A stretch of DNA of 64,000 nucleotides from Asterias rubens (Eukaryota): NCBI RefSeq assembly GCF_902459465.1, contig NC_047066.1, positions 11,160,001-11,224,000 on the forward strand, read 5' to 3'. Made by a program: the position numbers and the translations under genes. Positions 1 through 47,745 of the stretch are shown here, one piece after another. A model generated the notes under the pieces. That model ran no database searches and was not told the origin of the DNA. It saw only the letters and a list, made by a program, of their open reading frames with translations. How positions within the stretch are numbered: position 1 is the first letter of the stretch; the number at the start of each line of letters is the position of its first letter.

Positions 1-126
1 TCTCTTCAACTCCGACGATCAATCGAGCTAAAATTTTCACAGGTTTGTTATTTTATGCATATTTTGAGATACACCAAGTGAGAAGACTGGTCTTTGACAA
101 TTACCAATAGTGTCCAGTGTCTTTAA
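1..126. mobile_element. Kolobok-like MITE family A, partial (window edge)
   Basis: Ends with TIR ...TTACCAATAGTGTCCAGTGTCTTTAA. Family A consensus is about 385 bp with TTAA|AGGCAGTGGACACTATTGGTAATT termini. Confidence 0.8.
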
Positions 127-1652
127 ATATTGCATGCAAAGGCTTGTTTAAAAATTATTGTACTGCAGTGGTGAGCAAAAAGTATCAGCTGCATTATTCA
201 CTGCCAAAAAGAAACCCATTAATGTAACATGAGGTCTGATCAGTATTCTACACTTTGTGGATGTATTCTATGTCTATTATTAAAAACCTGAATGAATATA
301 TTAATAACACCATAATGTATCATTTACTACAATCAGCAAGAAAGGTGTTTCTTCATAGAGCAACATTATTGCAGGTTTGTTGCAGTCCAGTTATACATTT
401 GGTGATACATGTAATTGAAGTGGTCTATACAAAACAAAACTCAATGTATTGCTAGTAAAAAAGAAATGCATTATAGAGCGCCACCAAGAGTTTAATTGGG
501 GCCATTTTCAAAGTCTATTCTAGAAGACTAGCAAATAATGCACACGTTATAAGCTTTGAGCTTTTCAAAGCATTCCATAAAGCCGTGCATATAACAACAT
601 ATAATTATCACTGTTAACAGACACAAGTTTACAACAAAAAACTTAATAATAAAATCAGTTTAATCGTTCAAACGCTTACAAAGTCCCAGAAACCTCGTTC
701 CAGGGGTGATCCATGCCGCGTCCTTTAAGCAAGTTTGCGCTGCTTGCTTTGCCCACAGTATTTGTTACTAAAAATGTTCCAGTACATGTATTAATATTTC
801 AAACAGGCCTGTGTGGTTGAACCACTCAAACCACTCAACGTGCGCGCTTTAAGTGCAATAGCCTGCAATAGAGGCACAAAGAGCAGCCTATAGTCTCCTC
901 TCGTTTTTCTTTTATAACGTGACATGTCAAACTGTATGCAGTTTTTTTAGAAAGAAGTAATTTCCAACTTAAATATTTGAATTTGAATATGAGACAAACT
1001 TTCTACTCATTTGATTTTGAGACCTCAGATTTAGAATTTGAGATCCCCAAAACAAGCATCCAAAAGCACACATCTTCGTGTGACAAGCATGTTTTTTATT
1101 CCATTATTACTTCCCTACCAGGGGTAAGTGATGAGAGGTATTGATACGGCGTGACACCCTGGTTAGTGAGGCTGTTATTACCCATCTCGCCAATTTAACT
1201 GATGCTGCTAGCGTGGACTTCAAACATGTCTGAGAAGGAACACTGTTTCCATGTTACTATTAATGGCATTTAATTGGCCACAAGGCTCAAATATTAACTG
1301 CGACTGTGCAAAGTTATGTGGTTGTCCCAGGAGATTTGTAAAAATAACCGTTGTGAAGATTGAAACTGTTAAAAACAAAAAAATCAAAGCACTGATGAAA
1401 TACCGCTCCAATAAATTGTGTTTATTTTTATGGTTAATTATTTGCAAGTGGTTAGCAAAGAATTGATTGATGTTTTTATTTCACATATCATGGGATACAC
1501 AGTCAGACGGAAGAGGCAGGAGCAGGACTTGTGGTTCATAAAAGCTTCATCGAGTAGCTATTACACCACAACTGCGAGTTAAACACAAGCGAGACGTGTT
1601 GAGATACGATCAACTGTAACTCCTGTTTGCAGAAGATTAAAAGCGAATCGTC

Positions 1653-2786
1653 ATGGGGAATGATGTGACATCAGATAGCTGTAGTTTGTCCTATAACATC
1701 ACTGAGGAGACCACATCCGATTGGATTCATACACCGGTGGATACCATCATAACCACTATCATCATACCGATTATAGTAACCATAGGAATCTTCAACAACA
1801 CTACTTTTGTTTTTGTCATATTCCGCATTCCTAGAATGAGATCGGAAACTAATATCTATTTGGTACACTTGGCACTGGCTGATCTTCTGTTCTTGTGCCT
1901 ATCTGCGTTACAGTACTTCTGGCTCTATGCAACATCGCCAGTGTTCGATAGTGTCATCTTTGTGACCTCGGCAGAGTGTGTCAGCTTTTTTGTAGCCATA
2001 AACACTGGATATTTTGCATCCATTGCTTTAATAACCATGGTTTCGTTTGAGAGATATCTTGCCATGTGCCATCCTCTAAAGCACCTGAGAATCCGTACAC
2101 GGAAAAGAACCAATAAAATCGTGGCAATCTGTTGGTCAGTTGGGCTTGTGTTGTCCGGATTAGCTGTTCTGCGTAATGCTAAAATCACCTTTGTCTGCCT
2201 GCAATGGCCAGACGATGACATGTACCACGAGTTCCCATTAATTGTGGCATTTTGTGGTGTCGTACAGCCATGGATAAATTACTTGACTACTCCATTGCTA
2301 AACATTCCTTGGATAGTCGCACTGGTTTCCAACATTTACATGTACATAAAGATCATTCAAATGTTACACAACCGGACAGCCATTGGTAGGACTTCTCAAA
2401 GTGACCTCACCAAGCTCCGAACCCGAAACCAGGTGGTCAAAATGTTGATTGTTAATGGTGTGGTGTTCTTCCTGTGTCAAATGCCATATGCTGTTCTGAG
2501 CTTCACAAAAATCATCTGTATCATAGCGGGGATTCCTGATCCAATCCAAGCTGCACTCGGCATGTCAGGAGACTGGATCTTCGTAATCCCACAATTGATC
2601 AATAACAGTGTAAATCCACTGATTTATGGACTAATCAGTGCTCAGTATCGTACTGCATTCACGCAAGCATTTCAGTGCAAAAAGCACCATAGACAGCCAC
2701 AAAGTATCTACACAGTTTGCACTGCATCAAATCGAGCCATCACGACAGGTTCGTTGGTGAAGAACGTATGTAAAAGCCAAGTCTAA
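1653..2786 (+). CDS. Intronless rhodopsin-class (class A) orphan GPCR, peptide-receptor-like; cluster copy 1 (377 aa)
   Basis: Long ORF with 7 hydrophobic segments and motifs HLALADLL (TM2), SFERYLAMCHP (TM3, ERY), CW (TM4), FFLCQMPY (TM6), NPLIYG (TM7). Splice-acceptor-like TTTGCAG ends at 1632. Confidence 0.95.
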   Translation: MGNDVTSDSCSLSYNITEETTSDWIHTPVDTIITTIIIPIIVTIGIFNNTTFVFVIFRIPRMRSETNIYLVHLALADLLFLCLSALQYFWLYATSPVFDSVIFVTSAECVSFFVAINTGYFASIALITMVSFERYLAMCHPLKHLRIRTRKRTNKIVAICWSVGLVLSGLAVLRNAKITFVCLQWPDDDMYHEFPLIVAFCGVVQPWINYLTTPLLNIPWIVALVSNIYMYIKIIQMLHNRTAIGRTSQSDLTKLRTRNQVVKMLIVNGVVFFLCQMPYAVLSFTKIICIIAGIPDPIQAALGMSGDWIFVIPQLINNSVNPLIYGLISAQYRTAFTQAFQCKKHHRQPQSIYTVCTASNRAITTGSLVKNVCKSQV

Positions 2787-3170
2787 TATATAGAGTTTTC
2801 TTGCGTACATCATACTATAGAAAACTCGCTCAATGCAACTCCAATGGCATCAGGGATCAATTTCACAAAGAGCTTAGATAGATTGCATATGTAACTCAAT
2901 AAATCGCAGTTGCTTAGTAAAGTGTGATGTCACTATTCAGATCTCTTTGGTAATACTTACAATTTGTATTGCAATAAATTGTATTGCTTTTTGAAATCAG
3001 CCCCTGGTCTACAGTTTGCGCAATACAGACAGGATACTTCAGTCTGAGTCCAAAGGCAAGTGTTTGCAAATCCGTTTCACATTTTAAGATATACATGATC
3101 ATTGTAATATAGGCCTACGTCTGTTTCCCAGTATTCACACTGTTACAAAAATCAGATGTATTTATTAAGA

Positions 3171-3558
3171 TTAAAGGGAAGGTACACGTTTGGTAATATC
3201 TCAAAACAAATGTTAACTTCAAAACTGACTTGGTAGTGAACATTGGATAGCTGTTGACACACGTACAGTATTAAACATTGTGAGAAATGGCTCCCTCTGA
3301 AGTACATGTAGCATAAGTTTTGAAATAGAGGTAATTTCTCACTAAAATAATAAAAGACTTCTAGCTAGAAGTCTTTAATTCCTATCTGAACGCACACAAA
3401 TTCGTCCATCAAGGATGGTTTTTTTTTTCATCATTTTCTCCCAACTCCGATGACCAATTGAGCTCAAATTTTCAGAGTTGTTACTTTATGCATTTGTTGA
3501 GATGCACCTAGTGAGAACCGGGTCTTTGACAATTACCAATAGTGTACCTTCCCTTTAA
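3171..3558. mobile_element. Kolobok-like MITE family A (variant TIR)
   Basis: TTAAAGGGAAGGTACAC...GTGTACCTTCCCTTTAA; internal sequence shared with family A. Confidence 0.8.
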
Positions 3559-4399
3559 CAAAGGTTTAGGGTGCAGCACAGTGCCAGAGTGGTGTTGCTT
3601 ATCTCAAATGGGTCCAATGCGTCCCTACGTCAGGACTTAACTCGTCCTAAGTCCTCAGACTAATCCTTACGAAGAGTTTTGTGAAATCGACGACTGGTAT
3701 TTTCTTTGCAGTAAAGGGATATGAAGAAACGCACTACCTATGTACATGTACTAAAGCCGGTAAGAACAGAAGTATGCTAAGCACAAAACAAAATCAAGCT
3801 TTGGCAGAAACTGTGTACCAGTCAAAATACCATGAAATTCACATAAATAAAAAAACTAAAAAAACTAAATGTTTGCTGAAATGAAATTTGCTGAGAAGTA
3901 TTTTCTGCTTTAACAGGTTGTTGAAGTGTAGCCCAGAACACCAACCATTTGTTGTGTTGTTTTACACTCAAACATGAACACTTAAACAGATTAGGAAATA
4001 TAAATTAATTGACTCTACCAAAAACCACTGATATAATATCCCTTTAAGAATCATAAAGACAATGGTGTGACAGTCCTAATATTACCCTGTATTTGCCAAT
4101 GGTTGAGTGCAGGTCGTCGGCCCAGTGTTCTTTATGTTCATTCAATGTACTATTTTTAATTGCTTCTCTTTTGCTTTCCTCGAAAAGCATGTGATAAAAT
4201 AAATACATAAAATCCTTCAATTCCTAGTTTTGCATGAATATACCAATTTTGTCCATTGGCAACTATAGGTTCATCGATACAAGCCCTACTGTATGGGTTT
4301 CTAGATAGATTTGTTTTACTTGAGTGGAAACTAAGACAGAAAGAGAGAAAGAAACAAACAAATATCAATGGTAGAAATCAAAAGTACTTCGGTCTGAAG

Positions 4400-5474
4400 C
4401 AGGCCTCAAATTTCCCGGCGGCCACGACGGCCATGGCCGCCGGTGCCCTGCTTACTGGCCGTGGTGCCCCGAGAAAATCTGACATTTTCGCGGCCAAAAA
4501 GGCCGTGCCCTTTTTCTCCGATGGCCGCCGTGCCCTTTTTGAGATCAAAATTTATGTTTTGATACACCACCACCATCCGTCTGTGTGCACATAAAATCAA
4601 ACACTTACATGTACATTCTATATTAATACACGCACACAGAGCGCGGTCGGTTGAATGCTCATCACACGGAATTTAAACGGACGGCAGCATATCCATGCAG
4701 TGCATGTGTGTGTGCACGATGCAGAACGAACGACAGACGTGCATCCATCATAGACATTGTGTACTCGAAGTTTATACACGGGCCGGATGTACTTGCAACG
4801 ACCATTTGAGAACAATCGCACTGGTACTCATCTTGCAACATGCGTACCCACGCAAGGTTGTCCATGATGGGTACCAGCTAATCACAATTTCGGTTCCATT
4901 CGAGGTTGGGCGTCCGCCTATTCCACTGGTGTTGTGCTTGTTCACTGGTACTCGTACATGTTTGTGCACGTGGGCCATGTTACGTAAATCACACATCATG
5001 TACATGTACATGAAAAGTACATGTACATGTACTTTACATGTACATGTATGTCCGTTGAATAAATCTCCGCTCTGCACACAGTCAAGTGACAGCTCATTGT
5101 TTACGTCCGGCCGTCGCAACAAAATCTCCGCTGCACACAGTTAAGTGACAGTTCATTGTTTACGTCTGGCCATCGCAACAAAAAATGGATGCTTACTTTT
5201 ACTTCCCATTAATCAATAAAATTAAATACATTTAAAAATACTTGATGTTTTTTTGTTACAGGAAAGCAAAAGTAATGAAATGGTTCATTAAAATAGCCTT
5301 CATGGACCTGAACAGAAATTGTTTCATGATCTTTATTTTTTATGGCCTTGATGCCCTTTTTGAAATTTTAAGTTGGCCTTGGTGCCCTACCCCATGGCCT
5401 TGGTGCCCTTTCAAAATTTGACAAATTCAAGGCCAAAGTGGCCTTGCCCTAAAAATCGGGAAATTTGAGGCCTG
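4400..5474. mobile_element. Non-autonomous hAT-like DNA transposon (1075 bp) with 6-bp target duplication
   Basis: 17-bp TIR CAGGCCTCAAATTTCCC / GGGAAATTTGAGGCCTG. CTGAAG on both flanks. Subterminal GGCC(N)GTGCCC repeats at both ends. Confidence 0.8.
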
Positions 5475-6290
5475 CTGAAGATATCTTGTCCTAAATTCAA
5501 AGGTCACAATACAATTTTGTTGGCTGAACAAAATACTATAGCAGTTGGTGAATGTTAAATTACGCTTGTTTTGTTTATTTTTTTAGTTTTGTGTTTTTTA
5601 TTTCAACTAGTGCCCCAAACAAGGCTAAAAAGCCACTCTGTGTAAATGGGACAACCAGAAGGAAAACAGAAATTTGGTTTACTGTTACGTTAAAATATTA
5701 ACGATGAATATAGGAATACTATTTATAGGAATGTTTTGGTTTTTGGTGGAAATAGAATAGACAAGATTACAAACACTTATCTGCACTTTACGTGAATACA
5801 CTCCGATAATGAAGGTTTCCCCCAGCCAATTTCAGTAAAAATGAAATAGGTTATATTAACACGCATTCAATTCACGATTTCCTATTTCAATCAAACTCAG
5901 GTTTTTTTTAGTTTTTTTTTAAGGTGCTATATATATAATTGTGTGTTTTTGCACACATGGCAGTCAACACTACATTTTTCACAGTTCTCCGGTTTAATTT
6001 CAACAATGTCTATTTACAAACAATGAAAATGAATGGCTGATCAGCCTCTTGCTGTTGGCATTTGCGAAGTTCAATGATCTTTACGACCTACATGTATACA
6101 AATTTGAAGGCTCTTATTTGACCAGTGAATGCTAAACTATTGACAATCAACTACAAAACGGAGCAATCTTATTTAACCGAAATTGAACATGCTGGATCAA
6201 TCAGACTGGTTTTCATTGAGACAGATGGTTGTTGAAATTGGTCAGGAAAAAATATTTTAACTTTTAACAGAAGCGTTTTGTGGTTTGTTT

Positions 6291-6652
6291 TTAAAGTGTA
6301 TAAGTACTTTTTGTAGGACAAAAAACACAATGTCCACAGATGTACACTAAACTTACACAGTTTGAAGATACTCATACTGTAGTAGAAAGCTTCCCTTAAA
6401 ATAATACTTGCTGAGGTGCTGTAGTTTCTGAGAAATGAGTAAAATAATTTTTGTCTCAGTGATTATTTTAGCATGTAAGAACGTATTTTCATGACATTGT
6501 TTTACTCATTTACTCATTCTCAAAAACTACAGCACCGCAGAAGGTAATGTTTTAAGGTGCGCTTTCTACTACCATTATCTTCAACCGGTGTAGTTTAATG
6601 TAAATCTGTGGACATTGCGTTTTGTGTTACAAAAAGTACCCAAATCCTTCAA
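6291..6652. mobile_element. TTAA-type MITE family B (degenerate)
   Basis: Imperfect TIR AAG...GTACTTTTTGTA / TACAAAAAGTAC...CTT. Related fragments near 21296-21470 and 42281-42440. Confidence 0.55.
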
Positions 6653-7439
6653 AACGTGTAAAGGTGGTAGCCTGTTTGATGTGGAGAGGGAGATAACACA
6701 CTTTTATGTTTTAAAATTCAACTTGCAAATTCCTTTCAAAAGGGTTCAACAAAATCTTACACTGAATATTTACCAGTAAAAGCATGGTATCCAAGGGCAT
6801 ACATTGTTAGTACTTTTTGGTTATACAGTCTATTTTTATGATCCAGGCAAAAAAATGTTTCCGTCACAAAAGAAATCCTGGGCAGAACCCTGTGTAATAT
6901 TATGTGTCGTTCCTTAAAATGCAAATTTACTTTTAATAAGGAACAACCTACTCCGCGGTAGTGGAATAAGGAAAGACAGTTCTCTATGAACAAACTCTAC
7001 CTGGCAAGTACATTGTAGATACATGTACACACATGGTGTTATCACAAACCAAATATATATATATTGATACCTCCCACTCCCATGCAATGCCTCAAGTCCT
7101 AACTGCAATGCCTCAAATCCCATAGACTGTATAAGCTTCAGTTATACCATACACCTGTTCATGTATGAGATACATCATAATTTCTAACTACAGTGTACAT
7201 TCTAAGCAATCTTGTTGTACCACAGTGTACACTGTGAATTCTTGTTTGTCATGAACAATCACTTAATGTACTACAAATACTCAAGTGCATCTAGAACCTG
7301 CAAAATAAGACCTGATAATGAGACTTGACTTCCTTTTTTTGTTACAACACTTAAGAAGAATTCTGCCAAACTGATGTTCATGATTATCTTCAAACCTATT
7401 GGTCACACAAGTTTGGGCGTGATTGGCACATGAGGTTTT

Positions 7440-7844
7440 TTAAAGGCAGTGGACACTATTGGTAATTGTCAAAGACTAGCCTTCACAGTTGGTGTATCTC
7501 AACATACGCATAAAACAACCATCCTGTGAAAATTTGAGCTCAATCGGTCACCTCCCTGGCGAGATAATAATGAAACAAAAAAAACACCCATGTCACACGA
7601 AGTTGTGTGCGTTTAGACATGTTACATGTAGATGGTTGATTTCGAGACCTCAAGTTCTAAATCTGAGGTCTCAAAATCAGAAATTTGTGGAAAATTACTT
7701 CTTTCTTGAAAACTATGGCACTTCAGAGGGAGCCGTTTCTCCAGATTTTATACCATCAACCTCTCCCCATTACTTGTCACCAAGAAAGGTTTTATGCTAA
7801 TAATTATTTTCAGTAATTACCAATAGTGTCTATACTGCCTTTAA
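7440..7844. mobile_element. Kolobok-like MITE family A
   Basis: TTAA-flanked TIRs and internal hairpin GATTTCGAGACCTCA...TGAGGTCTC. Confidence 0.85.
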
Positions 7845-8296
7845 AAAGCAAGCATCATCGGGGGCATTTACCCGCAGTACGTGCAAACCTTAATACTTCA
7901 CTTAATTGATGCATATTTTAGGCATTGAGGAGAACCTTACTGGTAACCATTGAGGAGAACCTTACTGGTAACCATCAACATCATAAAGCGCTCATAAAAC
8001 TTTATGAAACCTGTGTGGGTTTAACTGCTGGTTTTATTAACGTTTTGCTGCCTTGTACTTGTGTATATTAGCACCCAACTTCATAGAGCTGTTAAGCACA
8101 ATTATTTGCTAAGCACAGATAAATTATGCTTAGCTAAAACAGGTTACCACCCGAAAAGAAATGAAACGATGAAGAAGATAATAACTCCAATATGGTTAAT
8201 TGACATCTTGCACCAAGGGTGAGAGCACACAAATAAAGTCTTCACTTTGACCCTTGGCCCTGGACTGCTTAAAGCACAAATAAAGCAGTTTAAACA

Positions 8297-8718
8297 AAGG
8301 CAGTGGACACTATTGGTTATAATTAATTTTAGTAATTACCAATGGTAATTACTAAAAATAATTGTTACCTTAAACCCTTACTTAGTAAGTTGGTAACGAG
8401 AATGTGGAGCTGTTGATAGTATAAAACATTGTGAGAAACGGCTCCCTCTGAAGTAACGTAGTTTTCGAGAAAGGAGTAATTTTCCACGAATTTGATTTTG
8501 AGACGTCAACAGAATTAGATTTTGAGGTCTTGAAATCAAGCATCTGAAAGCACACAACTTTGTGTGTCAAGGGTGTTTTTTTCTTCATTATTATCTCACA
8601 ACTTCGACGACCAATTGAGCTCAAATTTTTACAGGTTTGTTATTTTATGCACATGTTGAGATACACCAAGTGAGAAGACTGGTCTTTGACAATTACCACT
8701 AGTGCCCAGTGTCTTTAA
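8297..8718. mobile_element. Kolobok-like MITE family A
   Basis: Family A TIRs and body, reverse orientation. Confidence 0.8.
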
Positions 8719-10318
8719 TAATAAAGCACACATAAAGCAGTCAAGCACAACACAATCCTGCTGTAAACCAGAATGAGGTTACCATGTTTTGATGAGAAGC
8801 AGAGTGTGGATTTGGGTTCCACTCTTGGCACAGACAATTGTGTCCTTAAGCAAAATACTTGACAATTGTTGTTTGTGTCATGACCGTGAAAGAAAAGGAA
8901 GTTTCACTAGAGACAGGTCTTTTGCTTCAGCTGCACCATGTATCTGGAACTCTCTACCACTTTGAATCTCAGATCTTGTCTTTGTACCCCAAAAATCAAA
9001 TCTCTTCTCAACACTAATTATCTCATGCCACAGGTTTTCAAGGACTAATTTTGTTGTGTCTGTTTTCTATCGTTTTGGTTTTGGTTTTACTGCACCTTGA
9101 TGAGCACCAACCGGTGTAAGGACCTATCATAGGCGCATTGCAAGTCTTTAAAGATGGGCTGCAATACGCGTCATCCAACGCCATCATTGATATATTAACA
9201 AGGCAAAAGTGCACGCGTGTACACGCTGCGCGTGACTCTCAGCCAATGGTAGCTCTTCACACGTGCACAATTAATCAAATATGGCGGCCGATTTGCGCCA
9301 ATTGCAATTCATCTATTGCTAAAAAAAATATTCAGTGCAAATACTTGTATTGTTGAGATAAATTGAGAAGTGGTTTGCCCCGTTTTCATGAAATGATTGG
9401 CTGCAGAATGCAACACAGTACCTTCACCTTGTTAACAGTGGCATTAAAAGTGATCTCATAAATCAACAATATTTATTACCAAGCAAACCTGTACAGTCCA
9501 TCACTGTGATTTTAACCTTCTGGCGAAGACGTGCCACATAAAAGACTTGTTTAGTATGTTTTATTATAAAACATTTTGGGAGCCGCTACCAGCAGTTTCC
9601 TTCAAACTTGAAACAAAAAAGAACTGAAGCACCCTAAAAAAAAAACTGGAAGCTGTTAAACAAAACAAATTCATGAAAAATATTCTCTTGAGGTTTTTTT
9701 TGCAAGTATAGTTATTTTTAAATAATGACCTAAAAAAGGGTCAAATTACATATAATCCGTACAATTTGAGTTAATACTTTTAGTCATTTTCTGGGTCAGC
9801 CTGACCAGGAAATGAGTCAGACCCCCAAGGACACTGAATCACAGTCAGTTCTGACCAAGGTAGCTATAGAGTGAACTGTAACCCAATGAATAGGCTTGAA
9901 GATAACTACATGTATGCAGAGAATAAACTGAAGAAATAACTATATTTCCAAATTGGCGACTAGTTCTACAGCTATACGACTGTGGCTAAGAACATATATC
10001 TCTTAACACATGAAGACGCAGCAACCAAGCATTATGACGTAGCCATATACATTCGCCAATTCGTACACGGCACCAAACTGAGACCATCAACAATGTAACT
10101 AGAACTCGCATGAAACCAGTCTGCAGAGCCTATTCGTAAATCTACCTCGCTTACAAGACGTACGCCATCATTAATAGCAATAACTTTCGCAAATATCCTT
10201 TGCGCTAGCGCTAACTGTTGAATGAGAAGCATGTTGGTCAAGCTTACGAGTACTTGCTATATGAACAACCCACGCTTGACGACACACAAGGTATGACCAC
10301 ACTTTATGACAGCTCCTG

Positions 10319-10573
10319 GGCCCAATTTCATGGCTCTGCTTACCGCCGAATTCTGCGCTTAATATCACGATTCCCTGCTTACATGTACATGCAAGCGCCA
10401 AATTTATGCACTAGCCTTGTAAGCATAGAATGCCTAGTAACGTGAAGTACGCACGCGCAGAAGCCAGAATTCACCGCTAACCCGTGAAATACGCTTGCCG
10501 TAAACACTAGAATTCCCTGCTTCCGTAAGTGCCGGTTCTGTGCTTACGGTAAGCAGAGCCATGAAATTGGGCC
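10319..10573. mobile_element. PIF/Harbinger-like MITE with CTG target duplication
   Basis: TIR GGCCCAATTTCATGGCTCTGCTTACCG / CGGTAAGCAGAGCCATGAAATTGGGCC. CTG on both flanks. Confidence 0.75.
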
Positions 10574-10784
10574 CTGGCCGAGAGCCAAGTTGCACATGAG
10601 TATTCAGCTACCACATGACATAAGCCTACGTTCTCTCAAGGTTGTATACAGCGCCTTGAGTACCTTGTTTGATGCGCTATATTCTTTTATATAACACCCA
10701 AGCAGATCCTTGCCATTTGATTGGAGGATTGTCCGTCACGTGATAGCAAATAAAAGTACCATTGTACGCTGAGTCACTCGCCGT

Positions 10785-10869
10785 GCTTTTTCGTTCCATC
10801 CGAAAAGTACCATTGCACGCTGGCACGCTGCCAGCGTGCAATGGTACTTTTCGGATGGAACGAAAAAGC
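10785..10869. repeat. Perfect palindrome, 41-bp arms, 3-nt loop
   Basis: GCTTTTTCGTTCCATCCGAAAAGTACCATTGCACGCTGGCA-CGC-exact reverse complement. Confidence 0.95.
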
Positions 10870-11043
10870 TGAGTAAAAACATCACTGCGTGCGCGTGTCT
10901 TTGGTAACGCAGCAGGTGTTACTGCAAGAAGGCATAGTAAAATTACTAGCATTCGGCTTCTACAGTTGAAATTGTTTGTTTTGAAAGTTGTTTCTTTCAA
11001 TCAAAATGACAAAGTTCTACTTGGATGTTATATAAAACAAATA

Positions 11044-11193
11044 ATGAATGTTTTTCATTCGTGCAATGGTGCGAATATGTTCATTCGTTGAAAGCTGGAA
11101 TGTTCCATTCAACTCGGCTCCGCCTCGTTGAATAGAACATTCCATCTTTCAACTCATGAACATATTCGCACCATTGCACTCATAAACATTCAT
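11044..11193. repeat. Imperfect palindrome of about 150 bp
   Basis: ATGAATGTTT..GTGCAATGGTGCGAATATGTTCAT..GTTGAAAG ... CTTTCAAC..ATGAACATATTCGCACCATTGCAC..AAACATTCAT. Confidence 0.9.
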
Positions 11194-11523
11194 TGTGTAC
11201 AATATTATTATTATAAAAATACCGTTCCGAATCAATGGGTACCAGTAGAATAGACAGCTATAAAAAATATTAGAGGCAGCCATTTTCCATCATACTTGCC
11301 CGACGCTGATCAATGTGTTTAGCATTTAAAAAGCAAAACATGAAACAAAACTGCTCAGTATCGACTCAACTGTCCACAAAAAAGTTTGACATTTACCACA
11401 GTGTTGTCAACCTACACATATTCACTTAGCTTACAGCTTCTTTTGTGTAGCTATAGATTTCAGCCCAATCTCACTACATACATGTACAGACACAGTTGAC
11501 TTCCAGGAGCTCTAGCTTACAAC

Positions 11524-12603
11524 ATGGAATCAAATTACTGCAGAGTGACTTATTACATCGAGGAGGAGGATGTTTCAGCGTGGATTTATCCTCCAGCAGA
11601 CGACATCATTATTACCATCATCTTACCAATCTTAATGGGTCTTGGTCTAATCAGCAACTCTACTTTTCTTCTCATCATTTTCCGCATCCCGAAAATGAGA
11701 TCCGATACTAACATCATCTTGGCACATTTGGCAATATCTGACCTACTGTTCCTGGCCACTTCAGTACTACAGTATATGTGGAGCTATTATACCTCGATAG
11801 TCATCTATAATGAGCCCTACCAGAGCTCAGCTGGATGTGTGATTCATGCTGGATTGACAAATATTGGCTACTTTGCAGCTATTCTGTTGGTAACAATGGT
11901 GTCCTTTGAAAGATACCTTGCAATGTGTCATCCTGTGAAACATCTTAAGATCCGTGGAAGGAAACGAACTAACAGACTTGTTGCTATCTGCTGGGTTGTT
12001 GGGATCGTAATTTCTGCTTTGACAGTACCCTTGTGGGCTGATTATCAAACTGATATGTGCCTCCGATGGCCTGAAAATGACACTTACCAGGGATTTCCTT
12101 CAACAATGTCGTATTGTCGCCCGTTAGCGCCTTGGATAATACACGTTGTCATACCATTGTTGAACTTTCCCTGGACCATATTAATGGTTGCTAACGTTTT
12201 TATGTTTGTTGGTATCGTTCGGGCGTTGCACAACCGCGTTGGTGCCAACGTGGTAAAAGATGATCAGAAGGCACAACAAGTAAGGAACCAAGTTGCTAAG
12301 ATGCTGGTTGTGAATGGTATCATTTTCTTCATCTGTCATATCCCATATCGCGTGTTCAGTTTCAGTTGGTGGATTTGTTACGTTGCCCAGATCCCCAATC
12401 CACTAGACCTTGTGTTTGGGGACACATTGCAGAAGTGGATCACAGCCCTTCCTCAGCTAATCAACACTTGTATAAATCCATTGATATACGGTGCGATGAA
12501 CTCGCAATACCGTCTAGCATTCAAACAGGTGTTTCTCTGCAAAGCAAAACAACGGCCTAGGTCTGTTTCTACAATGAGTCGAACAGAGATGACTGGTGTC
12601 TAA
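11524..12603 (+). CDS. Intronless rhodopsin-class orphan GPCR; cluster copy 2 (359 aa)
   Basis: Motifs HLAISDLL, SFERYLAMCHP, FFICHIPY, NPLIYG. Colinear with copies 1 and 3. Confidence 0.95.
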   Translation: MESNYCRVTYYIEEEDVSAWIYPPADDIIITIILPILMGLGLISNSTFLLIIFRIPKMRSDTNIILAHLAISDLLFLATSVLQYMWSYYTSIVIYNEPYQSSAGCVIHAGLTNIGYFAAILLVTMVSFERYLAMCHPVKHLKIRGRKRTNRLVAICWVVGIVISALTVPLWADYQTDMCLRWPENDTYQGFPSTMSYCRPLAPWIIHVVIPLLNFPWTILMVANVFMFVGIVRALHNRVGANVVKDDQKAQQVRNQVAKMLVVNGIIFFICHIPYRVFSFSWWICYVAQIPNPLDLVFGDTLQKWITALPQLINTCINPLIYGAMNSQYRLAFKQVFLCKAKQRPRSVSTMSRTEMTGV

Positions 12604-12699
12604 GAATCAAAGTATTAATTTTAACGACATCTTGTTGTAGAAATTATACAGTCCTCTTTTTTTAATCAAAAATCAGTGTTCATATTTACGTGTACCATG

Positions 12700-13027
12700 T
12701 ACAGTGCAAAAACTGGGGTGTTAAATTGACACCATGGGTGTTGCCACTGATGCATTTACTTTTTGAACCTTCATCTTGTATACATGTACATAGAGATTAA
12801 TGATTTTAAAGTTTCTGTGATGTGTTTTGTAAGTATTAGTAATTTTATAATGATTCCAACCGCATGTGGTTGCAAATAAAAATGAACCTTACCTTACCTT
12901 AGAAAGATACCAACAAATGAACCAACATTTACACCCTAGGGCGATTAAATAACATAAACTTCTCTGGTATAAGACAACACCTACATGTACATGGTGTCAA
13001 TTTTAACACTTCATTCTTTGCAGTGTA
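12700..13027. mobile_element. TA-flanked MITE just downstream of GPCR copy 2
   Basis: Imperfect TIR TACAGTGCAAAAA..GTGTTAAATTGACACCATG / CATGGTGTCAATTTTAACAC..TTTGCAGTGTA. Confidence 0.6.
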
Positions 13028-13119
13028 GCATATAAATGTTTTACATCAACATTTTGGGTAAAATCTGTCGAACATTGGGCCTACTTTAAAGTTATATTGA
13101 AAGTTTTAAAATGTTATTG

Positions 13120-13396
13120 TTAAAGGCACCGGATGTTTGGTAATTGCCAATGACCAGTATTCTCACTTGGTGGATCCAAACATATATGCATATAAAATAA
13201 CAAATCTGTGAAAATGTTTGCTCAATTCGTCGTCGAAGTTGCAAAAGAATAATGAGAGGAAATACACACTTTTGTGTGCTCTCAGATGCCGAAAAAAGAC
13301 TTCATGTCTGAAGACTTTAATTTTTTGAGTGGGAAATTACCTCTTTCTCAAAAACTACGTTACTTTGATTATTATCAATAGTGCCCAGTGCCTTAA
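13120..13396. mobile_element. Kolobok-like MITE family A, internally deleted
   Basis: TTAAAGGCACCGGA...CCCAGTGCCTTAA; shares its TTAA with the next element. Confidence 0.7.
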
Positions 13397-13768
13397 AGTA
13401 AATGCACAACATCAGTAAACAGTGTTGTCCAAAGGGCCACACTTTGTGTATCACAACTTATCTATAAAATAACAAACCTGTGAAAATTTAGGCTCAATCG
13501 GTCATCTGAGTCGGGAGAAAATAACTGGAATACCCACCCTTGTTTCCGCACATTTCGCCGTGTCATGACAAGTGTTTTAAATATATCCAGTATTCTCGAT
13601 ATCGAGAGTTGATAATTGTTTAAATGTTTTCTCAAAAAGTAAAGCATTTCATGGAATAATATTTCAAGGGAAGTCTTTCACCATTACCTTCTGTAAACCC
13701 TGTAAGTTATTTGTAAATTTGTGAACTTTTAATTTTTGTTCTGTTCAGAAAGTGTATAAAGGCTTTAA
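13393..13768. mobile_element. TTAA-type MITE family C
   Basis: Body matches 21645-22006 and 50854-51216 (AATTTAGGCTCAATCGG, GTTTTCTCAAAAAGTAAAGCATTTCATGG). Confidence 0.75.
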
Positions 13769-14520
13769 GCGTCATGGAAAACAGTTTTTGGGTAGCGATT
13801 GGCTCAACTTGTGTCTGTAACAAACTAAACTTGACAATAGAAAACAAGATATATCTGTATGTTGTCTTGTCAATTACCAAAGAAGATTGTTCCACTTTCT
13901 TACCGGAGAGCAGTTCTTTTATATTTATAGAAGGGCTGAATAAAAGCCCACTTTAGCAATTTTGTTTGCAAAAGTTTTAGTTTGCAACAATGCTCAACGA
14001 TACATTTCAATACAAATGAAAACACTGGTTAACGTTTTAAACACGAAGTGCACATAATATCAAATGGAAACGTAAACAATTTTAGTGCATGTATATTTAC
14101 ATGATGTACCCTGTAAGTTATTTGTAAATTTGTGAACTTTTAATTTTTGTTCTGTTCAGAAAGTGTATAAAGGCTTTAAGCGTCATGGAAAACAGTTTTT
14201 GGGTAGCAATTGGCTCAACTTGTGTCTGTAACAAACTAAACTTGACAATAGAAAACAAGATATATCTGTATGTTGTCTTGTCAATTACCAAAGAAGATTG
14301 TTCCATTTTCTTACCGGAGAGCAGTTCTTTTATATTTTGGAAGGGCTGAATAAAAGCCCACTTTAGCAATTTTGTTTGCAAAAGTTTTAGTTTGCAACAA
14401 TGCTCAACGATACATTTCAATACAAATGAAAACACTGGTTAAAGTTTTAAACACGAAGTGCACATAATATCAAATGGAAACGTAAACAATTTTAGTGCAT
14501 GTATATTTACATGATGTACC
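13697..14520 (+). repeat. 411-bp tandem duplication (2 copies)
   Basis: ACCCTGTAAGTTATTTG at 13697 and 14108. Only a few substitutions seen. The duplicated spurious ORFs in the track are also 411 bp apart. Confidence 0.92.
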
Positions 14521-15146
14521 ATCACCTTTTCATATGTAAATATGTAAATAATAATTACGGTGTTGTTGGGTTTTTTGGTACCACATTGTACATGTAGATG
14601 TGGCAACTGCACTCTTCTGAACAAATAATAAGTGCACTTTGATATTATAAATAGTCCAAGTATTATACTAGTAATAATTCTATATAAATTACATGAGATG
14701 CTCGTCAAATTTTGTGTGTTAATATTCATAATCACATTTTATATGTGCAACTATACTCCCATGAATGAAGGGCACTGTGATACAGTATGTATTATTAGTA
14801 TAGCCCATTCAAGTATATATTTTGGCTAATTTGTAAGTAAATAAATACAATTGTGATACTGCTGAAAACTTGTTGTGTTACTTTCTGTATTACATTTTAC
14901 GATGTGTAACTGCACTTTCATGATTGAATAATATGCGCACTTTGAAAAAATTATCCTAATCTATATACAAACAACCAATATATATTAGCCTACTTTATAA
15001 TCACTTGTAAACAAATACAATTGGGATGCTGGTGAAAGTTTGTTTGCGTTAATTCGTGTATCACTATGACGATGACAGGAAGTTCCATCATACTCTCCCT
15101 TCGATAGTAATTGTTGAATTAATAGTATTTAATGTAAGTCACTCTC

Positions 15147-15498
15147 TTAAAGATGCTATTAAAGAATGGATTTTTTTGAGTGAATGGTATTTCAAAGAGT
15201 ATCACCCGCTCTAACGAAAAAAAAGTTGAACTTTTACTTTTAATGGTCAGCAACCATGACAAAATTTTTAAACATTTCTAATAAAACACATAAGAATTGG
15301 TCACGTGATATATTGTCGGGATCCCGACAAAAACTAATTTTGAGCACTTTATTTCACTGCTACTAATAATTGGCGGACTTTTTCGAGCAATGGCTCAAAT
15401 GAAAGCTTGTAACTTTCTCGACCCCCATCAAAATACCTATTAAATTTTAAATCAAAATTTTGGGGTAAAATCGGCCAAAAATCTGACAGCATCTTTAA
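15147..15498. mobile_element. TTAA-type MITE (AGATGCT termini)
   Basis: TTAAAGATGCT...AGCATCTTTAA; internal 18-bp palindrome TTGTCGGGATCCCGACAA (15313-15330). Confidence 0.65.
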
Positions 15499-15909
15499 TG
15501 TAAAAGAGTGAAAAACCACTCATTTTGTCCGCCATACCACTAATGCAAAGAGCAATTAATGGCGGACAACTCTTTTTAGAGTGAAACACTGGTACTTGCA
15601 ACTCGATTTAGATTGAAGTTTGTTCCAACTTCACTCAAAACGAGTGACACAGAAAGACTTTCACTCTCAAAAGACCTAAACAGACACCACTCGGACAAGA
15701 GAGTCAATTTTTCACTGGCTTACATTAAGAGAGTACAACATTTAAAAGACTATCCGAACACATACGTACATGTAGTATGCCTCGTCAGATGTAAATAAAT
15801 GCAATTGGGAATTGGTGAAACTTTGTGTGTGTTAATTTTTGTGTCACAATAAATATATTTTGTTTATGAAGGGACTGAACTAAGTGATGATAAGAAACTA
15901 TTTTAATCT

Positions 15910-16301
15910 TTAAAAGCAGTAGACACCATTGGTACATGTAAATACTCAAAATAATTATTAGCATAAAACCGTTATTTGGTAATGAGTAATGGGGAGAGGT
16001 TGATAGTATAAAACACTGTGAGCAACGGCTCCCTCTGAAGTGATGTAGTTTTCAAGAATGAAGTAATTTTCCACGAATTTGATTTTGAGACCTCAGATTT
16101 AGAATTTGAGGTTTCAAAATCAAGCATCTGAAAGCACACAACTTCGTGTGACAAGGGTGTTTTTTCTTTCATTATTATCTTGCAACTTCGACAACCAGTT
16201 GAGCTCAAATTTTCACAGGTTTGTTGTTTTATGCATATTTAAAATACACCAAGTGAGAAGACTAGTCTTTGGCAATTACCAATAGTGTCCAGTGTGTTTA
16301 A
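15910..16301. mobile_element. Kolobok-like MITE family A
   Basis: TTAA-flanked; opposite orientation to the copy at 16406. Confidence 0.85.
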
Positions 16302-16405
16302 GGAACTATGTTGTTAAACTTTCAAGAAGAAAGGGGGAATTTGATGAAACAAAAATAATTTTAAAAATTTAACGAGTGCAGTGTGAGTAAGGAAATGTTT
16401 GAGAT

Positions 16406-16790
16406 TTAAAGACAGTGGACATTATTGGTAATTGTTAAAGACCAGTCTTCTCACTTAGTGTATCTCAACATGCATAAAATAACAAACCTGTAAAAATTTG
16501 AGCTTGATTGGTCGTCGGAGTTGCAGATAACCATAAAAGAAAAAAAACACCCTTGTCACATGAAGTTGTGTGCGTTTAGATGCTTGATTTCGAGACCTCA
16601 AATTCTAAACTTGAGGTCTCGAAATCAAATTCGTGGAAAATTACCTCTTTCTCGAAAACTATGTCACTTCAGAGGGAGCTGTTTCTAACATTGTTTTATA
16701 CTATCAACCTCTCCCAATTACTCTTTACCAAGTGAGGTTTTATGCTGATAATTATTTTGAGTAATTACCAATAGTGGCCACTGCCTTTAA
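16406..16790. mobile_element. Kolobok-like MITE family A
   Basis: TTAAAGACAGTGGAC...GGCCACTGCCTTTAA. Confidence 0.85.
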
Positions 16791-17405
16791 AGGCAAATTA
16801 CACCTTTCCTTTTTTTCAACCGTTCGGTCATTTTAACCCAGATACAAATTATGATTTACATATGTACAATCAAACTAACCTGTGAAAAACTCATTTCAAA
16901 AGGTGGTAGCCTTTTTGAGAAAAGACCACAGTTTTTCACATCTGTGTGTACAAAACCTAATAACGCTGCAAGCGTCCCATCAATGGCAGAGTTAGGTAAA
17001 GCACTTGCATGTACCAGCTAAAAAATGTTCAACTAAAAGTAGAGCTATCTGTAACTTCAAACAAAATGCAATTTACTCAAGTTGTACTTTCTTTAATTAA
17101 AACAAAACCAATTGTATGTCACTAATGACTAAAAGTCACCAACATTAATTGCTTGGATTATAAGGAACCAAGGTCAATTGGTAAATGTACACTGCCTCCC
17201 TCCCTCACAAAAAAATACGACTTAGACGTAGATATCCAACCCCCCCCCCACCCCCAAATTCCCTACGGATGAGAGATTTAGTTAAAACAATGTAGTTGGA
17301 GTTTTGTGTTTACCTGTTTAAAGTGAGGGTATTTTACAATTATTAATCAAAAGTACAAACAAGAAGTACATTATAAGTACATTGCACTGTCCCACTTGGA
17401 GTGAC

Positions 17406-17802
17406 TTAAAGACACTGGACACTATTGGTTATTGTCACAGACTACCCTTCACACTTGTATCTCAACATATGCTCAACATTTATGCATATAAAACAACAAA
17501 CCTGTGAAATTTGAGCTCAATCGGTCGTTGATGTTGCGAGATAATGAAAGAAAAAAGCACCCTTGTCACACAAAGTTGTGTGCCTTCAGATGCCTGATTT
17601 CGAGACCTCAAATTCTAAATCAGAGGTCTCGAAATCAAATTCGTGGAATAATTACTTCTTTCTCGAACACTAGATTACTTCAGAGGGAGCCGTTTCTCAC
17701 AATGTTTTATACTATAAACGGCTCTCCATTACTCGTTGCCAAGTAAGGTTTAATTATGCCAATAATTATTTTGAGTATTTACCATTAGTGTCCACTGTCT
17801 AA
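17406..17802. mobile_element. Kolobok-like MITE family A
   Basis: Family A TIRs and body. Confidence 0.82.
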
Positions 17803-18542
17803 TACTGATATCACAAAACCAACAGGATGAGACCTTAAGACACACAACCTAAATATAGAGTTAAACCTTTAATTAAGCAGTGAGATTATTCATTAGTTTA
17901 ATCCCTTGTACAATTATTAATTAAACCGCTATGTCTTATCAGTGATCACTGAAGTCAACGTATGGATTAAGGACCAGTGACAATGGGAAAGTGTACAGCC
18001 TCAATTCCCTCACACACACAAAAAAAGAGGCAAAACACAGTTACGACAATTTGGAAAAATGTTTTGACAGGTACATGCACATGTAGGTCCTTGTAGATGA
18101 TTAAATGGAATTACTCAAATGATAAATCACATAATGGATGCGAGGAACGTTTGTTACAGGAGCAAACAGACAGAATTGGAGCAGGTTGCAGATGATGATG
18201 GAGTGTTTAAAGATGCAACATCAAAAATTACACTTTGAGAAAAGAGTGTTTAAAAATGCAGCAAGATGACCACCATTCGTGACCACCTCTCATATGTACA
18301 AGACATAACGTGTGTTGACTGTCAAGATTATTCAGACTATATGACGATGAGGCTTCAGTCTATGTAGAGGAGACTCTCATTTCTGTCAAGCTCTAGTTTC
18401 TAAAAAAAATTAAATCGTTTTTGGCATAGTTTTGCAAGACTGCTTTTGTTTCAGAAGCAGTACTGATGGCATAAACTAACATATTTTGTCAAGACTAGGA
18501 AACCTTCAAACATTTATCCATGTGATATTCTCTTATTCAGTG

Positions 18543-19694
18543 ATGGATTTAAACACAACAATGGTGTCAGAGGACTGCAGTGCTTCTTATAACATCACTG
18601 AGGAGACAGTTTCTGAGTGGCTTTTTACTCCAGCAGACACCATCATTATTACCGTCATCATCCCAATTATCCTGGGTCTTGGAGTTATCACCAATGCTAC
18701 ATTTCTCTTTGTCATTTATCGCGTTCCAAAACTGAGATCTGTGACAAGCATTTACTTGGCACACTTGGCCCTGGCCGATCTTCTGTACTTAATTATGTCA
18801 GCGTTTTACCACATTTGGAGGTACGCATCATCACCGATGGTACCCCACACCCCTTTTATGGGTTCGGCTGGGTGTGGCTGTTTTATTACTGTTACAAATA
18901 CAGGATATTTTGCATCCATCGCACTGGTGACTAGCATGTCCTTTGAGAGGTACCTTGCCTTGTGTCATCCAATGAAACATCTGAAAATACGCGGCAGGGG
19001 GCTTACTCTCACATCATTGGCAATCTGTTGGTTGGTTGGCTTTGCATTTGCTGCAGTGACTGTTCTCAGTTCAGCGACTCTCTACACGGATTGCCTACAA
19101 TGGCCAGATGAGGACGAGTACCTAGGATTCCCTTTGATAAGATCATACTGTGGTCCTGTCCAACCCTGGGTACCATACTACACTTTACCGCTTGTAAATT
19201 TACCCTGGTTGATAGCAATGGTGGCTAACATCTACATGTATGCACGTATTGTAATAACATTAAACAAACGCGGTTCCGTCAGCAGAATGATCCAAGACCC
19301 AAAGGCTGTACAAGTTCGGAACCAAGTAGCCAAGATGCTGATTGTCAATGGAGTTGTATTCTTCATCTGCCAGACACCATACCGCGTGATAAGTCTGACC
19401 GCATGGGTTAGTCTTTTAGCGCAGATTCAGGATCCTTTGAGCACAGCCCTTGGAAATGCTGGCGTATGGATATCGAGCCTTCCTCAGTTGATGAACACTT
19501 TCATCAATCCATTGATTTATGGAATGATGAGTGGACAGTACAGAACGGCATTAATCCAAGTGTTTCAATGTCAACCCAAGGCAAGACTGATGAGACAACA
19601 GGCTACCACAACTAGAGCATCAAAGATTGACAACTCAGCCTCCCAAATCACCTCACCGACGACGACAAGTGAGACATTTGAAACTAGACTGTGA
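18543..19694 (+). CDS. Intronless rhodopsin-class orphan GPCR; cluster copy 3 (383 aa from MDLNTT)
   Basis: Motifs HLALADLL, SFERYLALCHP, FFICQTPY, NPLIYG. The ORF-track start (18486) is not ATG; the first ATG is 18543, 2 nt after acceptor-like TTATTCAG. Confidence 0.93.
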   Translation: MDLNTTMVSEDCSASYNITEETVSEWLFTPADTIIITVIIPIILGLGVITNATFLFVIYRVPKLRSVTSIYLAHLALADLLYLIMSAFYHIWRYASSPMVPHTPFMGSAGCGCFITVTNTGYFASIALVTSMSFERYLALCHPMKHLKIRGRGLTLTSLAICWLVGFAFAAVTVLSSATLYTDCLQWPDEDEYLGFPLIRSYCGPVQPWVPYYTLPLVNLPWLIAMVANIYMYARIVITLNKRGSVSRMIQDPKAVQVRNQVAKMLIVNGVVFFICQTPYRVISLTAWVSLLAQIQDPLSTALGNAGVWISSLPQLMNTFINPLIYGMMSGQYRTALIQVFQCQPKARLMRQQATTTRASKIDNSASQITSPTTTSETFETRL

Positions 19695-20280
19695 CTACTT
19701 CAATTCGTCTGGCTCTATTCCATACTCAAAATCACAGATCATTAGACAATCTTCTCAAGTCAGTTAAACATTTACGTATGGTTTATTTGTCAGACAAACT
19801 GTGAAAGACTAGAGAATTTCCCGTGTCACAATTTGGAAAATAACTCGTACCTGATCGATTAGGCCTATAATTTGCATTTGGTAATTCGCTTCACGCATTT
19901 TTGCACCAAGTTTATGAACCGAGAAATACTCAATATCTTGCAAGGACAATAGTACATTGTTTTGCGCACAATTGTAATGATACAATAATGCTTTCTTCAG
20001 ATCTAGTTCATATGCAACTATTTCGCACTGGTTACGACCTTGTTGTACTTACAAACATTTTTGATCCTCTTTGAGGTATTTGTTGGGGGTACACAAAACC
20101 GTTACAACGTTCTTGAAGGTACACAAAACAGTGTTGGTCTTTTAGATCGGGAGCCTTACGTGTAGCTACATGTAGGAAGTTAACCAGTGTACATAATAAT
20201 AGCAATGAAGGAAACTGACATCTGTAAAGCACATTCTGATGGGTTTGGTCCGATACACCACTCCTGTAGCATACCTTTAA

Positions 20281-20628
20281 TTAAAGGCACTGGACACTTT
20301 TGGTAATTATCAAAGACCAGTATTCATACTTGGTCATGTTGGTGAATAAAATAAAAGAACAAATCTGTGCACAATTTGGGAGAGAATAAGGAAAGAAAAA
20401 CGCACTTGTTGCACAAATGTGTGAGCTTTCAGATGCCCAAAAAGGTCTTCAGTCCTTGAATATTATTCGAGTGAAAAATTCCGCCTTTCTCAAAAACGTT
20501 GTTGCTTCAGAGGGAGCCATTTCTCACAGTGTTTTGTACAATCAACAGCTCTCCATTGCTCGTTACCAAGTAAGTTTTTATGCTAACAATTATTTTGAGT
20601 AATTACCAATAGTGTCCACAACCTTTGA
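20281..20628. mobile_element. Kolobok-like MITE family A (older, partly deleted)
   Basis: TTAAAGGCACTGGACAC...AATAGTGTCCACAACCTTTGA; 45 nt from a DEPDC5 exon. Confidence 0.75.
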
Positions 20629-20673
20629 TAATCAATCAAAATCTTGACAAAGAGACACAAAAAAAGAACTTAC

Positions 20674-28550: not shown

Positions 28551-28857
28551 TTGCAATTGAGTGAAAGATACAAATGGGGATACAAAACTTGCAAAGTTGT
28601 GTACAGCCCACAGGCACAAAATGAGCAACTCTGGCTGAAACATGAAGTATTCACAGACGCCATTTCAGTGAGCAACTCTTTTGATGCGACAATATACTGT
28701 ATCAGCACTGACAATGACCAGTGCTGTCAATGTAACAATACAAATGCTATTTGAAATAGGGGACATACTAGAGAAAGACATTGCAGTTTTCTTCCAAAAC
28801 AGAGAAATCCATTGATTACTCACCACTAAAGCTTTTCTGATGGACCCACAGCTTCAT
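20674..28857 (-). CDS. DEPDC5: GATOR1 complex subunit DEPDC5 (Iml1), 5' part; 5 coding exons, gene continues beyond the left edge of the window
   Basis: Exons (- strand): 28857-28824 (34 nt), 28027-27940 (88), 26756-26704 (53), 25103-24931 (173), 20872-20674 (199). All introns GT-AG with consistent phases. Spliced protein [36 protein letters not shown]...LLLQV...[19 protein letters not shown]...[25 protein letters not shown]...[15 protein letters not shown]...[22 protein letters not shown] matches the DEPDC5 N-terminus as I recall it. Confidence 0.93.
20921..21299. mobile_element. Kolobok-like MITE family A
   Basis: Perfect 28-bp TIRs including TTAA; opposite orientation to the 20281 copy. 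Confidence 0.88.
21645..22006. mobile_element. TTAA-type MITE family C
   Basis: TIR TTAAAGCCATTGGACCCTTTCGGT / ACCGAAAGGGTCCAATGGCTTTAA. Confidence 0.85.
22860..23142. mobile_element. PIF/Harbinger-like MITE (GGGTGCGTTCG termini)
   Basis: Imperfect TIR GGGTGCGTTCGATAAGCT / AGCTAAACGAACACACCC; internal palindromic repeats. One-ended fragment near 29570-29603. Confidence 0.65.
24019..24405. mobile_element. Kolobok-like MITE family A
   Basis: TTAA-flanked TIRs; opposite orientation to the 25178 copy. Confidence 0.88.
24720..24858 (-). mobile_element. tRNA-derived SINE (degenerate)
   Basis: On -, GTGTCGTGGCCGAGC.. (A box) and GGTTCGAGAC (B-box-like), then GACACTTGTGTCC. Similar to 25955-26043. 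Confidence 0.65.
25178..25563. mobile_element. Kolobok-like MITE family A
   Basis: TTAA-flanked TIRs. Confidence 0.88.
25783..26043 (-). mobile_element. tRNA-derived SINE with A-rich tail
   Basis: On -, GTGTCATGGCCGAGCGGTTAAG (A box) and GGTTTGAATCCC (B box), body, and A-rich tail at 25812-25783. Confidence 0.75.
26291..26640. mobile_element. Kolobok-like MITE family A
   Basis: TTAA-flanked, with a short internal deletion. Confidence 0.82.
28160..28550 (+). mobile_element. 5'-truncated L2/CR1-group LINE 3' end with (TTA)18 tail
   Basis: Translation [32 protein letters not shown] matches the L2/CR1 ORF2 C-terminal motif ([17 protein letters not shown]). Degraded HWLP motif upstream. Microsatellite tail 28495-28548. 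Confidence 0.8.
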
Positions 28858-47578: not shown

Positions 47579-47745
47579 TGTGCTTTCATAAAGCTGAGTT
47601 CATTCAAGTGCCGAAAATTGCACAAAATTGATGTTGAATGGATGCAGAGATGCAGGCTACCAAGTTAAAGTGAAAATGTTGATATCATGAGCGTGCTGTT
47701 ATTTTTAACTGTGCTTATTAAAGCAATACATTATATACTACCCCC

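Follow-up and report, generated by a model that had tools for sequence, protein, structure and literature searches.

The window analysed here is a 64,000-nucleotide stretch of chromosome 5 of the sea star Asterias rubens (C5:11160001-11224000; positions prefixed C5 are chromosome coordinates, and all others are counted from the first letter of the window). Its left part holds three intronless genes for class A G protein-coupled receptors (GPCRs) on the forward strand, named G8, G9 and G10, followed on the reverse strand by coding exons 5 to 1 of a DEPDC5-like gene; 980 bp separate the stop codon of G10 from exon 5. When the adjoining segment C5:11100001-11160000 was joined to the window and the resulting 124 kb were searched for receptors by open reading frame (ORF) scanning and tblastn, exactly ten receptor loci (G1 to G10) were found, spread over 58 kb and all situated within a 62-kb intron of the DEPDC5-like gene; tblastn detected no other receptor-like sequence in the 124 kb. 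The reading favoured here, to which a probability of about 0.8 is assigned, is that ten intronless class A GPCR genes, forming a tandem array with birth-and-death turnover, fill this single phase-1 intron of the sea-star DEPDC5-like gene. The coordinates of the receptor loci and of the host exons are collected in Table 1.

An initial annotation of the window had described a DEPDC5 exon that ends in the middle of the protein at a GTAAGT donor, and this holds for exon 5, which begins after an AG acceptor, ends in phase 1 and matches positions 23-94 of the Pfam IML1 profile (E 1.4e-19). A whole-genome scan with the IML1 profile found the following segment on the reverse strand at C5:11118463-11118606. 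The acceptor there consists of a pyrimidine tract and AG, then GA GAT CTG TAC ATC GAG AAA GCG GTG AAT GGT, and the end of exon 5 (..TGC G before GTAAGT) and the start of the next exon (GA GAT CTG after AG) are in phase, restoring Gly-Asp-Leu-Tyr (G-DLYIEKAVNGF). The expected continuation, DLYFEKAVNGF, which had not been found in positions 1-20673, is this in-phase (G)DLYIEKAVNGF exon beginning at C5:11118599. Residues 117-183 and 183-228 of the orthologous protein of Asterias amurensis (P0335) fall on the two exons with none left over, so no host exon is hidden in positions 1-20673 of the window; in particular, none was found between 19.7 and 20.67 kb. On either side of the array stand successive exons of one host gene, in phase with each other, and the array is in this sense nested. 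Two other accounts of the locus were discarded: the array is not an assembly artefact, as the 124 kb contain no N and three further assemblies show the same arrangement, and exon 5 is not part of a processed pseudogene, which introns, canonical splice sites and RNA support rule out.

Table 1. Receptor loci and host gene features (window positions unless prefixed C5)
Feature	Position	Strand	Description
G1-G4	C5:11121650-11132499	+	ORF scan/tblastn
G5	C5:11136884-11138059	-	ORF scan/tblastn
G6	C5:11144849-11146056	-	Frameshifted in third intracellular loop
G7	C5:11154851-11156041	+	ORF scan/tblastn
G8	1653..2786	+	Intact single-exon class A GPCR, 377 aa, antisense to host; 7tm_1 E 3.6e-29
G9	11524..12603	+	Intact single-exon class A GPCR, 359 aa, antisense to host; 7tm_1 E 2.6e-29
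G10	18543..19694	+	Intact single-exon class A GPCR, 383 aa from first ATG
Host exon 1, coding part	28824..28857	-	ATG at 28857; protein mapping
Host coding exon 2	27940..28027	-	Protein mapping
Host coding exon 3	26704..26756	-	Protein mapping
Host coding exon 4	24931..25103	-	P0335, P0382 and P0065 map here, AG/GT at the boundaries; spliced RNA contig
Optional 84-nt cassette exon	23446..23529	-	Used solely in RefSeq N-terminal isoform X1 (P0382)
Host DEPDC5-like exon 5	20674..20872	-	Residues ~117-183, AG acceptor, ...WDFDTCG, phase 1, GTAAGT donor
Right-hand third of host intron	1..20673	-	Whole intron C5:11118600-11180673, 62,074 bp, phase 1
Next host exon	C5:11118599-11118468	-	Residues 183-228 of P0335; 41.4 kb left of window

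The three receptor genes of the window had been described as paralogous, intronless and of class A, and each of these attributes was borne out. Their ORFs are uninterrupted, their pairwise identity of 49-52% is that of old paralogues, and all three match Pfam PF00001 (7tm_1) over its full length (profile positions 2-260 of 260, E 2e-29 to 2e-33) with scores of 102-116 bits against a curated cut-off of 30.5 bits; G5, G7 and the nested ORFs of Acanthaster planci and Patiria miniata described below pass the same test. All intact copies carry GxxxN (N1.50), LAxADLL (D2.50), ERYLAxCHP, CWxVG and NPLIY (NPVIY in G7), and with them the class A set of N1.50, D2.50, the cysteine of transmembrane helix (TM) 3, E/DRY, W4.50 and NPxxY. 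The tryptophan of the TM6 motif CWxP, a 'toggle' that is usual in class A GPCRs and not obligatory, is absent from all nine intact copies, where C-Q/H-x-P is found instead (FFICQTP, FFICHIP, FFLCQMP). Each gene of the window has a one-to-one orthologue in A. amurensis (93.4% identity for G8 with P0428, 95% for G9 with P0026, 96.3% for G10 with P0429), and G9 and P0026 are paired at 100/100 support in the receptor tree. The start of G10 may be placed differently: a TTG-initiated ORF of 402 aa extends from 18486, and the database model (P0001) begins six residues after the first ATG. A C-terminal S/T-x-L/V (SRL, SRV, TRL, SQV, TGV; positions 2775-2783, 12592-12600 and 19683-19691 in the window genes) is common to the nine intact receptors and their A. 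amurensis orthologues, and resembles a class I PDZ-binding tail.

The suggestion that the cluster extends to the left of the window was correct, since seven further loci (G1 to G7) lie there. The accompanying description of a three-gene antisense cluster stands as far as nesting and the three genes of the window are concerned, but the complete array has ten loci, of which eight are antisense to the host and two, G5 and G6, are on the host strand. Nine loci are intact, and the frameshifted G6 is probably a pseudogene. G1 to G4 are 82-94% identical and are arranged in units about 3.2 kb apart, whereas all other pairs are 41-63% identical and the synonymous divergence (dS) of the old members is saturated. 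Within the young group, the G3 unit (C5:11127041-11130300, or L013, 31 kb left of the window) is a mosaic: its upstream flank and approximately the first 90 nt of its coding sequence are 93-98% identical to G4, and the remainder through the 3′ flank is 96-99% identical to G2, a signature of unequal crossing-over. Some duplications postdate the separation of the two Asterias species, with dS of 0.065 between G2 and G3 and 0.055 between the members of an A. amurensis pair, compared with ~0.09 between orthologues. The ratio of nonsynonymous to synonymous substitution (dN/dS) is 0.29-0.45 for orthologue pairs of A. rubens and A. amurensis, 0.41-0.57 for young paralogues, and 0.15-0.24 in old pairs, for which dS is saturated. 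These values indicate that selection on the array is purifying but relaxed, and that birth and death of genes continue. Approximately 27 loci in the genome of A. rubens are at least 43% identical to G10; ten of them are in this array, and no other cluster of the subfamily is as large.

The homologous intron was compared among echinoderms. In A. amurensis it also carries antisense receptors of the subfamily: the annotated DEPDC5-like gene (1435 aa, 97% identical to the host) occupies a locus of 21 kb in which four GPCR genes lie antisense to it. The split between Asterias and the valvatids goes back roughly 200 million years, and in both valvatids sampled the same intron contains subfamily receptors that are antisense to the host. 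In A. planci (L022), the two exons at 22787-22987 and ~51932-52066 enclose 28.9 kb with four loci, namely two intact ORFs (378 and 377 aa), one disrupted ORF and one fragment; in P. miniata (L023), the exons at 34125-34323 and ~46760-46892 enclose 12.4 kb with two loci, one intact (381 aa) and one disrupted. These valvatid copies are missing from the gene lists of the L022 and L023 records. The sea urchin Strongylocentrotus purpuratus (L024) has the same junction, WDFDTCG/DLYMEKAVNGF, with its two sides ~0.5 kb apart, and no GPCR match was found in the 34 kb of this locus. Intron size and receptor count thus run from ~0.5 kb and none in the urchin through 12.4 kb and two in Patiria and 28.9 kb and four in Acanthaster to 62 kb and ten in A. 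rubens, in agreement with the earlier proposal that the array has grown inside its host. This graded occupancy of one intron from sea urchin to Asterias offers a stepwise picture of the expansion of a receptor family inside a host gene, with a product of unequal crossing-over still visible. Around the non-nested relatives P0007 of A. planci and P0008 and P0021 of P. miniata, no DEPDC5 exon was found within 10 kb; these loci are other clusters of the family and not evidence against nesting.

The host had been labelled as the housekeeping gene DEPDC5, scaffold of GATOR1. Its membership of the DEPDC5 family was upheld by IML1 profile matches on the exons of the window and downstream, and the orthologues of A. 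amurensis, A. planci and P. miniata carry IML1_N, vWA_IML1, DEP and DEPDC5_CTD domains. However, a second and compact DEPDC5 gene is located 10 Mb away at C5:1302631-1318118 (L001, L003, L006), where the homologous intron measures ~2.2 kb; the canonical protein P0225 (1589 aa) maps to that locus at 98%, whereas P0333 and P0335 correspond to the gene of the window. A protein search returned two forms in each echinoderm class sampled, of ~1370-1450 aa and ~1590-1680 aa. The DEPDC5 tree unites all sequences from echinoderms in a single clade (support 99), inside which an 'L' clade (support 100) includes the gene of the window. The host is therefore one of the two genes that echinoderms have as co-orthologues of DEPDC5, namely the shorter and longer-branched one (~1430 aa), and in the tree the duplication falls on the echinoderm stem. 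Since the host falls in the 'L' clade and the other copy is found at C5:1.3 Mb, it is not the single orthologue of vertebrate DEPDC5; and since it is the shorter, faster-evolving duplicate while P0225 is encoded elsewhere, the label of housekeeping GATOR1 scaffold is not established. The annotation of the A. rubens host should be corrected to an echinoderm-specific duplicate of DEPDC5, distinct from the canonical GATOR1 subunit.

According to the favoured reading, a single receptor gene would have come to lie in a small intron in an early ancestor of the sea stars and been multiplied there by unequal crossing-over, and an inversion would have given the sense-strand pair G5/G6, the intron lengthening with copy number by ~6 kb per locus. 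Each receptor would be a transcription unit of its own, and the host pre-mRNA would be transcribed across all of them and then spliced. A single entry with at least one escape is the origin that we infer from the trees and the shared position. Several results, in this paragraph and the next, weigh against this reading. The backbone of the receptor tree is unresolved, and the valvatid nested genes, which include species-specific duplications and are 35-43% identical to the A. rubens copies, form a 100/100 clade of their own that no Asterias copy joins with support; the tree therefore does not demonstrate orthology between the nested genes of Asterias and of the valvatids. An exclusive clade of all nested receptors, as first posed, is rejected by the approximately unbiased (AU) test (p-AU 6.6e-58), because P0050 of A. 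amurensis, which is located on another chromosome, sits inside the G5/G6 clade; without this translocated gene a single clade is not rejected (p-AU 0.18), an exclusion that was made post hoc. These results would suit two separate colonisations of the intron by one subfamily, in the lineage of Asterias and in that of the valvatids (Acanthaster, Patiria). Such a coincidence is nevertheless unlikely, given that the identical intron, the opposite strand and the same subfamily are found in three genera with no receptor elsewhere in these host genes, that the single clade escapes rejection once P0050 is set aside, and that fast birth-and-death turnover erases orthology signal. As for what the receptors detect, the turnover of the array, its pseudogene, its dN/dS of 0.3-0.57 and the inconsistent automatic names of subfamily members (opioid, capa, neuromedin-U, apelin, GHSR and somatostatin 'like') suggest environment-facing orphans of chemoreceptor type rather than conserved neuropeptide receptors. 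Against this suggestion, six subfamily motifs taken from A. planci members have 0 occurrences in the 63 published Acanthaster tube-foot ApOR sequences. The array could instead consist of ordinary receptors for endogenous peptides or hormones, with physiological ligands that are conserved, as might be expected from the peptide-receptor-like character of their nearest non-echinoderm relatives (P0063 and P0064, TRH-receptor-like and CCHamide-receptor, 23-27% identity), from the one-to-one A. amurensis orthologues of the window genes at 93-96% and from the S/T-x-L/V tail kept in all intact copies. This alternative, which deserves somewhat more credit than a double colonisation, is still improbable: ten paralogues with a pseudogene and species-specific duplications in one array, under the dN/dS just given, and mutually inconsistent names are not what conserved ligands would predict, and the only echinoderm class among the outgroup matches is that of the crinoids (P0061, 33% identity), with no echinoid, ophiuroid or holothuroid sequence. 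The locus defines a sea-star subfamily of ~27 orphan receptors in A. rubens, whose automatic naming as opioid-, capa-, apelin- or neuromedin-like misleads.

The remaining points against the favoured reading come from RNA and from gene models. RNA reads were mapped to positions 19200-25150 of the window only, where repeats dominated and the usable contigs were one that is spliced and a few of low depth. In run X5, a contig of depth 110 joins 20708-20870 to 24929-25033, which is the junction of exons 4 and 5 (24931/20872, with a 2-nt ambiguity); the N-terminal exons of the host are expressed and spliced. The 3′ part of G10 (19200-19694) has a depth of 4.6-6.4 against an intron background of 2-3.5 in the same run, the tissues of the runs being unstated, and ~0-0.8 in raw RNA reads of the sister species; runs labelled A. 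rubens contain almost none of the sequence words of G10. In the X5 sample, G10 is weakly expressed at most. The earlier suggestion that the nesting could cause transcriptional interference or co-regulation gains no support from these depths or from any other result of the analysis, and no sign of a functional tie between receptors and host was seen. A read or contig joining 20674 to C5:11118599 was not obtained from A. rubens, the donor junctions being swamped by repeats. RefSeq splits the A. rubens host at this very intron into P0065 (194 aa) and P0382 (222 aa) on one side and P0333 (1225 aa) on the other: the former two read through the exon 5 donor into intron sequence to a stop at 20636 (20636-20673), and the latter begins in the next exon at a methionine (MRNINSEL; C5:11118463-11118537). 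Nor did the protein collection contain an Asterias fragment spanning the junction of exons 5 and 6, the matches being just the two read-through models. Taken at face value, these models describe a host that is truly split in A. rubens, with exons 1-5 giving a read-through product of 194 or 222 aa, the 1225-aa remainder forming a separate unit, and the array lying between two genes. This is very unlikely, considering that the GTAAGT donor and the pyrimidine-tract/AG acceptor are intact and the exons in phase, that joined models exist in A. amurensis (1435 aa), A. planci (1420 aa) and P. miniata (1453 aa), and that contigs just past the exon 5 donor and elsewhere in the introns have a depth of 2-3.5, so that read-through is rare in X5 (110 on the exon, about 3 beyond the donor). 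Where a very long intron contains other genes, automatic annotation commonly breaks the host, and the RefSeq split is probably an artefact of the 62-kb gene-filled intron; the A. rubens host is probably one gene where RefSeq has two, and its annotation should be corrected in this respect also. Slimmer still is the chance that the array, in growing to 62 kb, has started to break up the A. rubens host, such that a substantial share of transcription from the DEPDC5-like promoter ends just past exon 5, with a 194- or 222-aa N-terminal product, and the 3′ part is expressed separately; if true, the gene would be caught in the course of fission, under the pressure of an expanding intronic family, as comparison with the single-unit gene of A. 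amurensis would show.

Several neighbouring features were recorded. The last coding exon of an ERp29 gene (32954-33496, forward strand; Pfam ERp29 E 2e-24, ERp29_N E 7e-9) lies head-to-head upstream of the DEPDC5-like gene, and ERp29 is its neighbour in P. miniata (L023) also. A gene with a BEN domain is nested antisense in an early DEPDC5-like intron of A. planci (L022:7248-12392) and P. miniata (L023:8369-16485); no BEN-domain-like ORF of at least 110 aa was seen in the A. rubens window, where the corresponding introns are short. About 10 kb past the 3′ end of the DEPDC5-like gene, both valvatids have an orthologous receptor of the subfamily (P0027, L020:10001-11152, in A. planci; P0021, L021:10001-11152, in P. 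miniata; 100/100 sisters), which in Patiria is inside a Reeler/EGF gene; the genome scan found no counterpart near the 3′ end in A. rubens. High-copy short repeats at ~20195-22184 and 23777-24572 flank host exons 4 and 5 and have depths of thousands to millions in every run. A 120-nt element at positions 7-131 has more than 40 genome copies at 92-97% identity. Positions 47718-48779 are a tandem repeat of ~1 kb with a 33-bp unit, open in multiple frames on both strands, and yield spurious ORFs of 324-353 aa.

Among known systems, the host is to be compared with DEPDC5/Iml1, a GATOR1 subunit, with which it shares the IML1_N, vWA_IML1, DEP and DEPDC5_CTD domains; the position of its intron after WDFD..G is shared by the A. 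rubens paralogue and the urchin gene. It differs in its length (~1430 aa versus 1590-1650 aa), in its longer branch and in being a duplicate copy.

The array resembles the surreal-GPCR expansions of sea urchins and the OR-like/ApOR expansions of Acanthaster (PMC5442662, PMC7042368) in single-exon coding, tandem arrangement in both orientations, lineage-specific duplication and large divergence between taxa. Relaxed purifying selection with birth and death, typical of receptor families that face the environment, has been described for both (PMC5442662, PMC7042368), and single exons, a tandem array and birth and death were found here as well. The array departs from the ApOR set in the absence of its subfamily motifs from the 63 published sequences. 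Arrays nested in a host intron are not mentioned in those papers, and the word 'nested' has 0 occurrences in PMC5442662. A literature search for DEPDC5 together with a nested gene and an intron returned nothing.

Genes that reside in introns of other genes are a second point of comparison. Nematode and insect chemoreceptor genes occur inside introns of unrelated genes. Like other nested intronic genes of animals, the receptors described here are intronless, mostly antisense to an unrelated host with a long intron, and presumably independent transcription units; the difference is that a whole array of ten loci occupies one intron, and that the occupancy is common to three genera of sea stars. 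The locus is typical of the evolution of lineage-specific GPCR arrays, here inside another gene; both kinds of arrangement are known, and there is no sign of a new mechanism. What is particular to it is that the same occupied intron has been kept across orders of sea stars with graded expansion, in a host that is itself a duplicate of DEPDC5.

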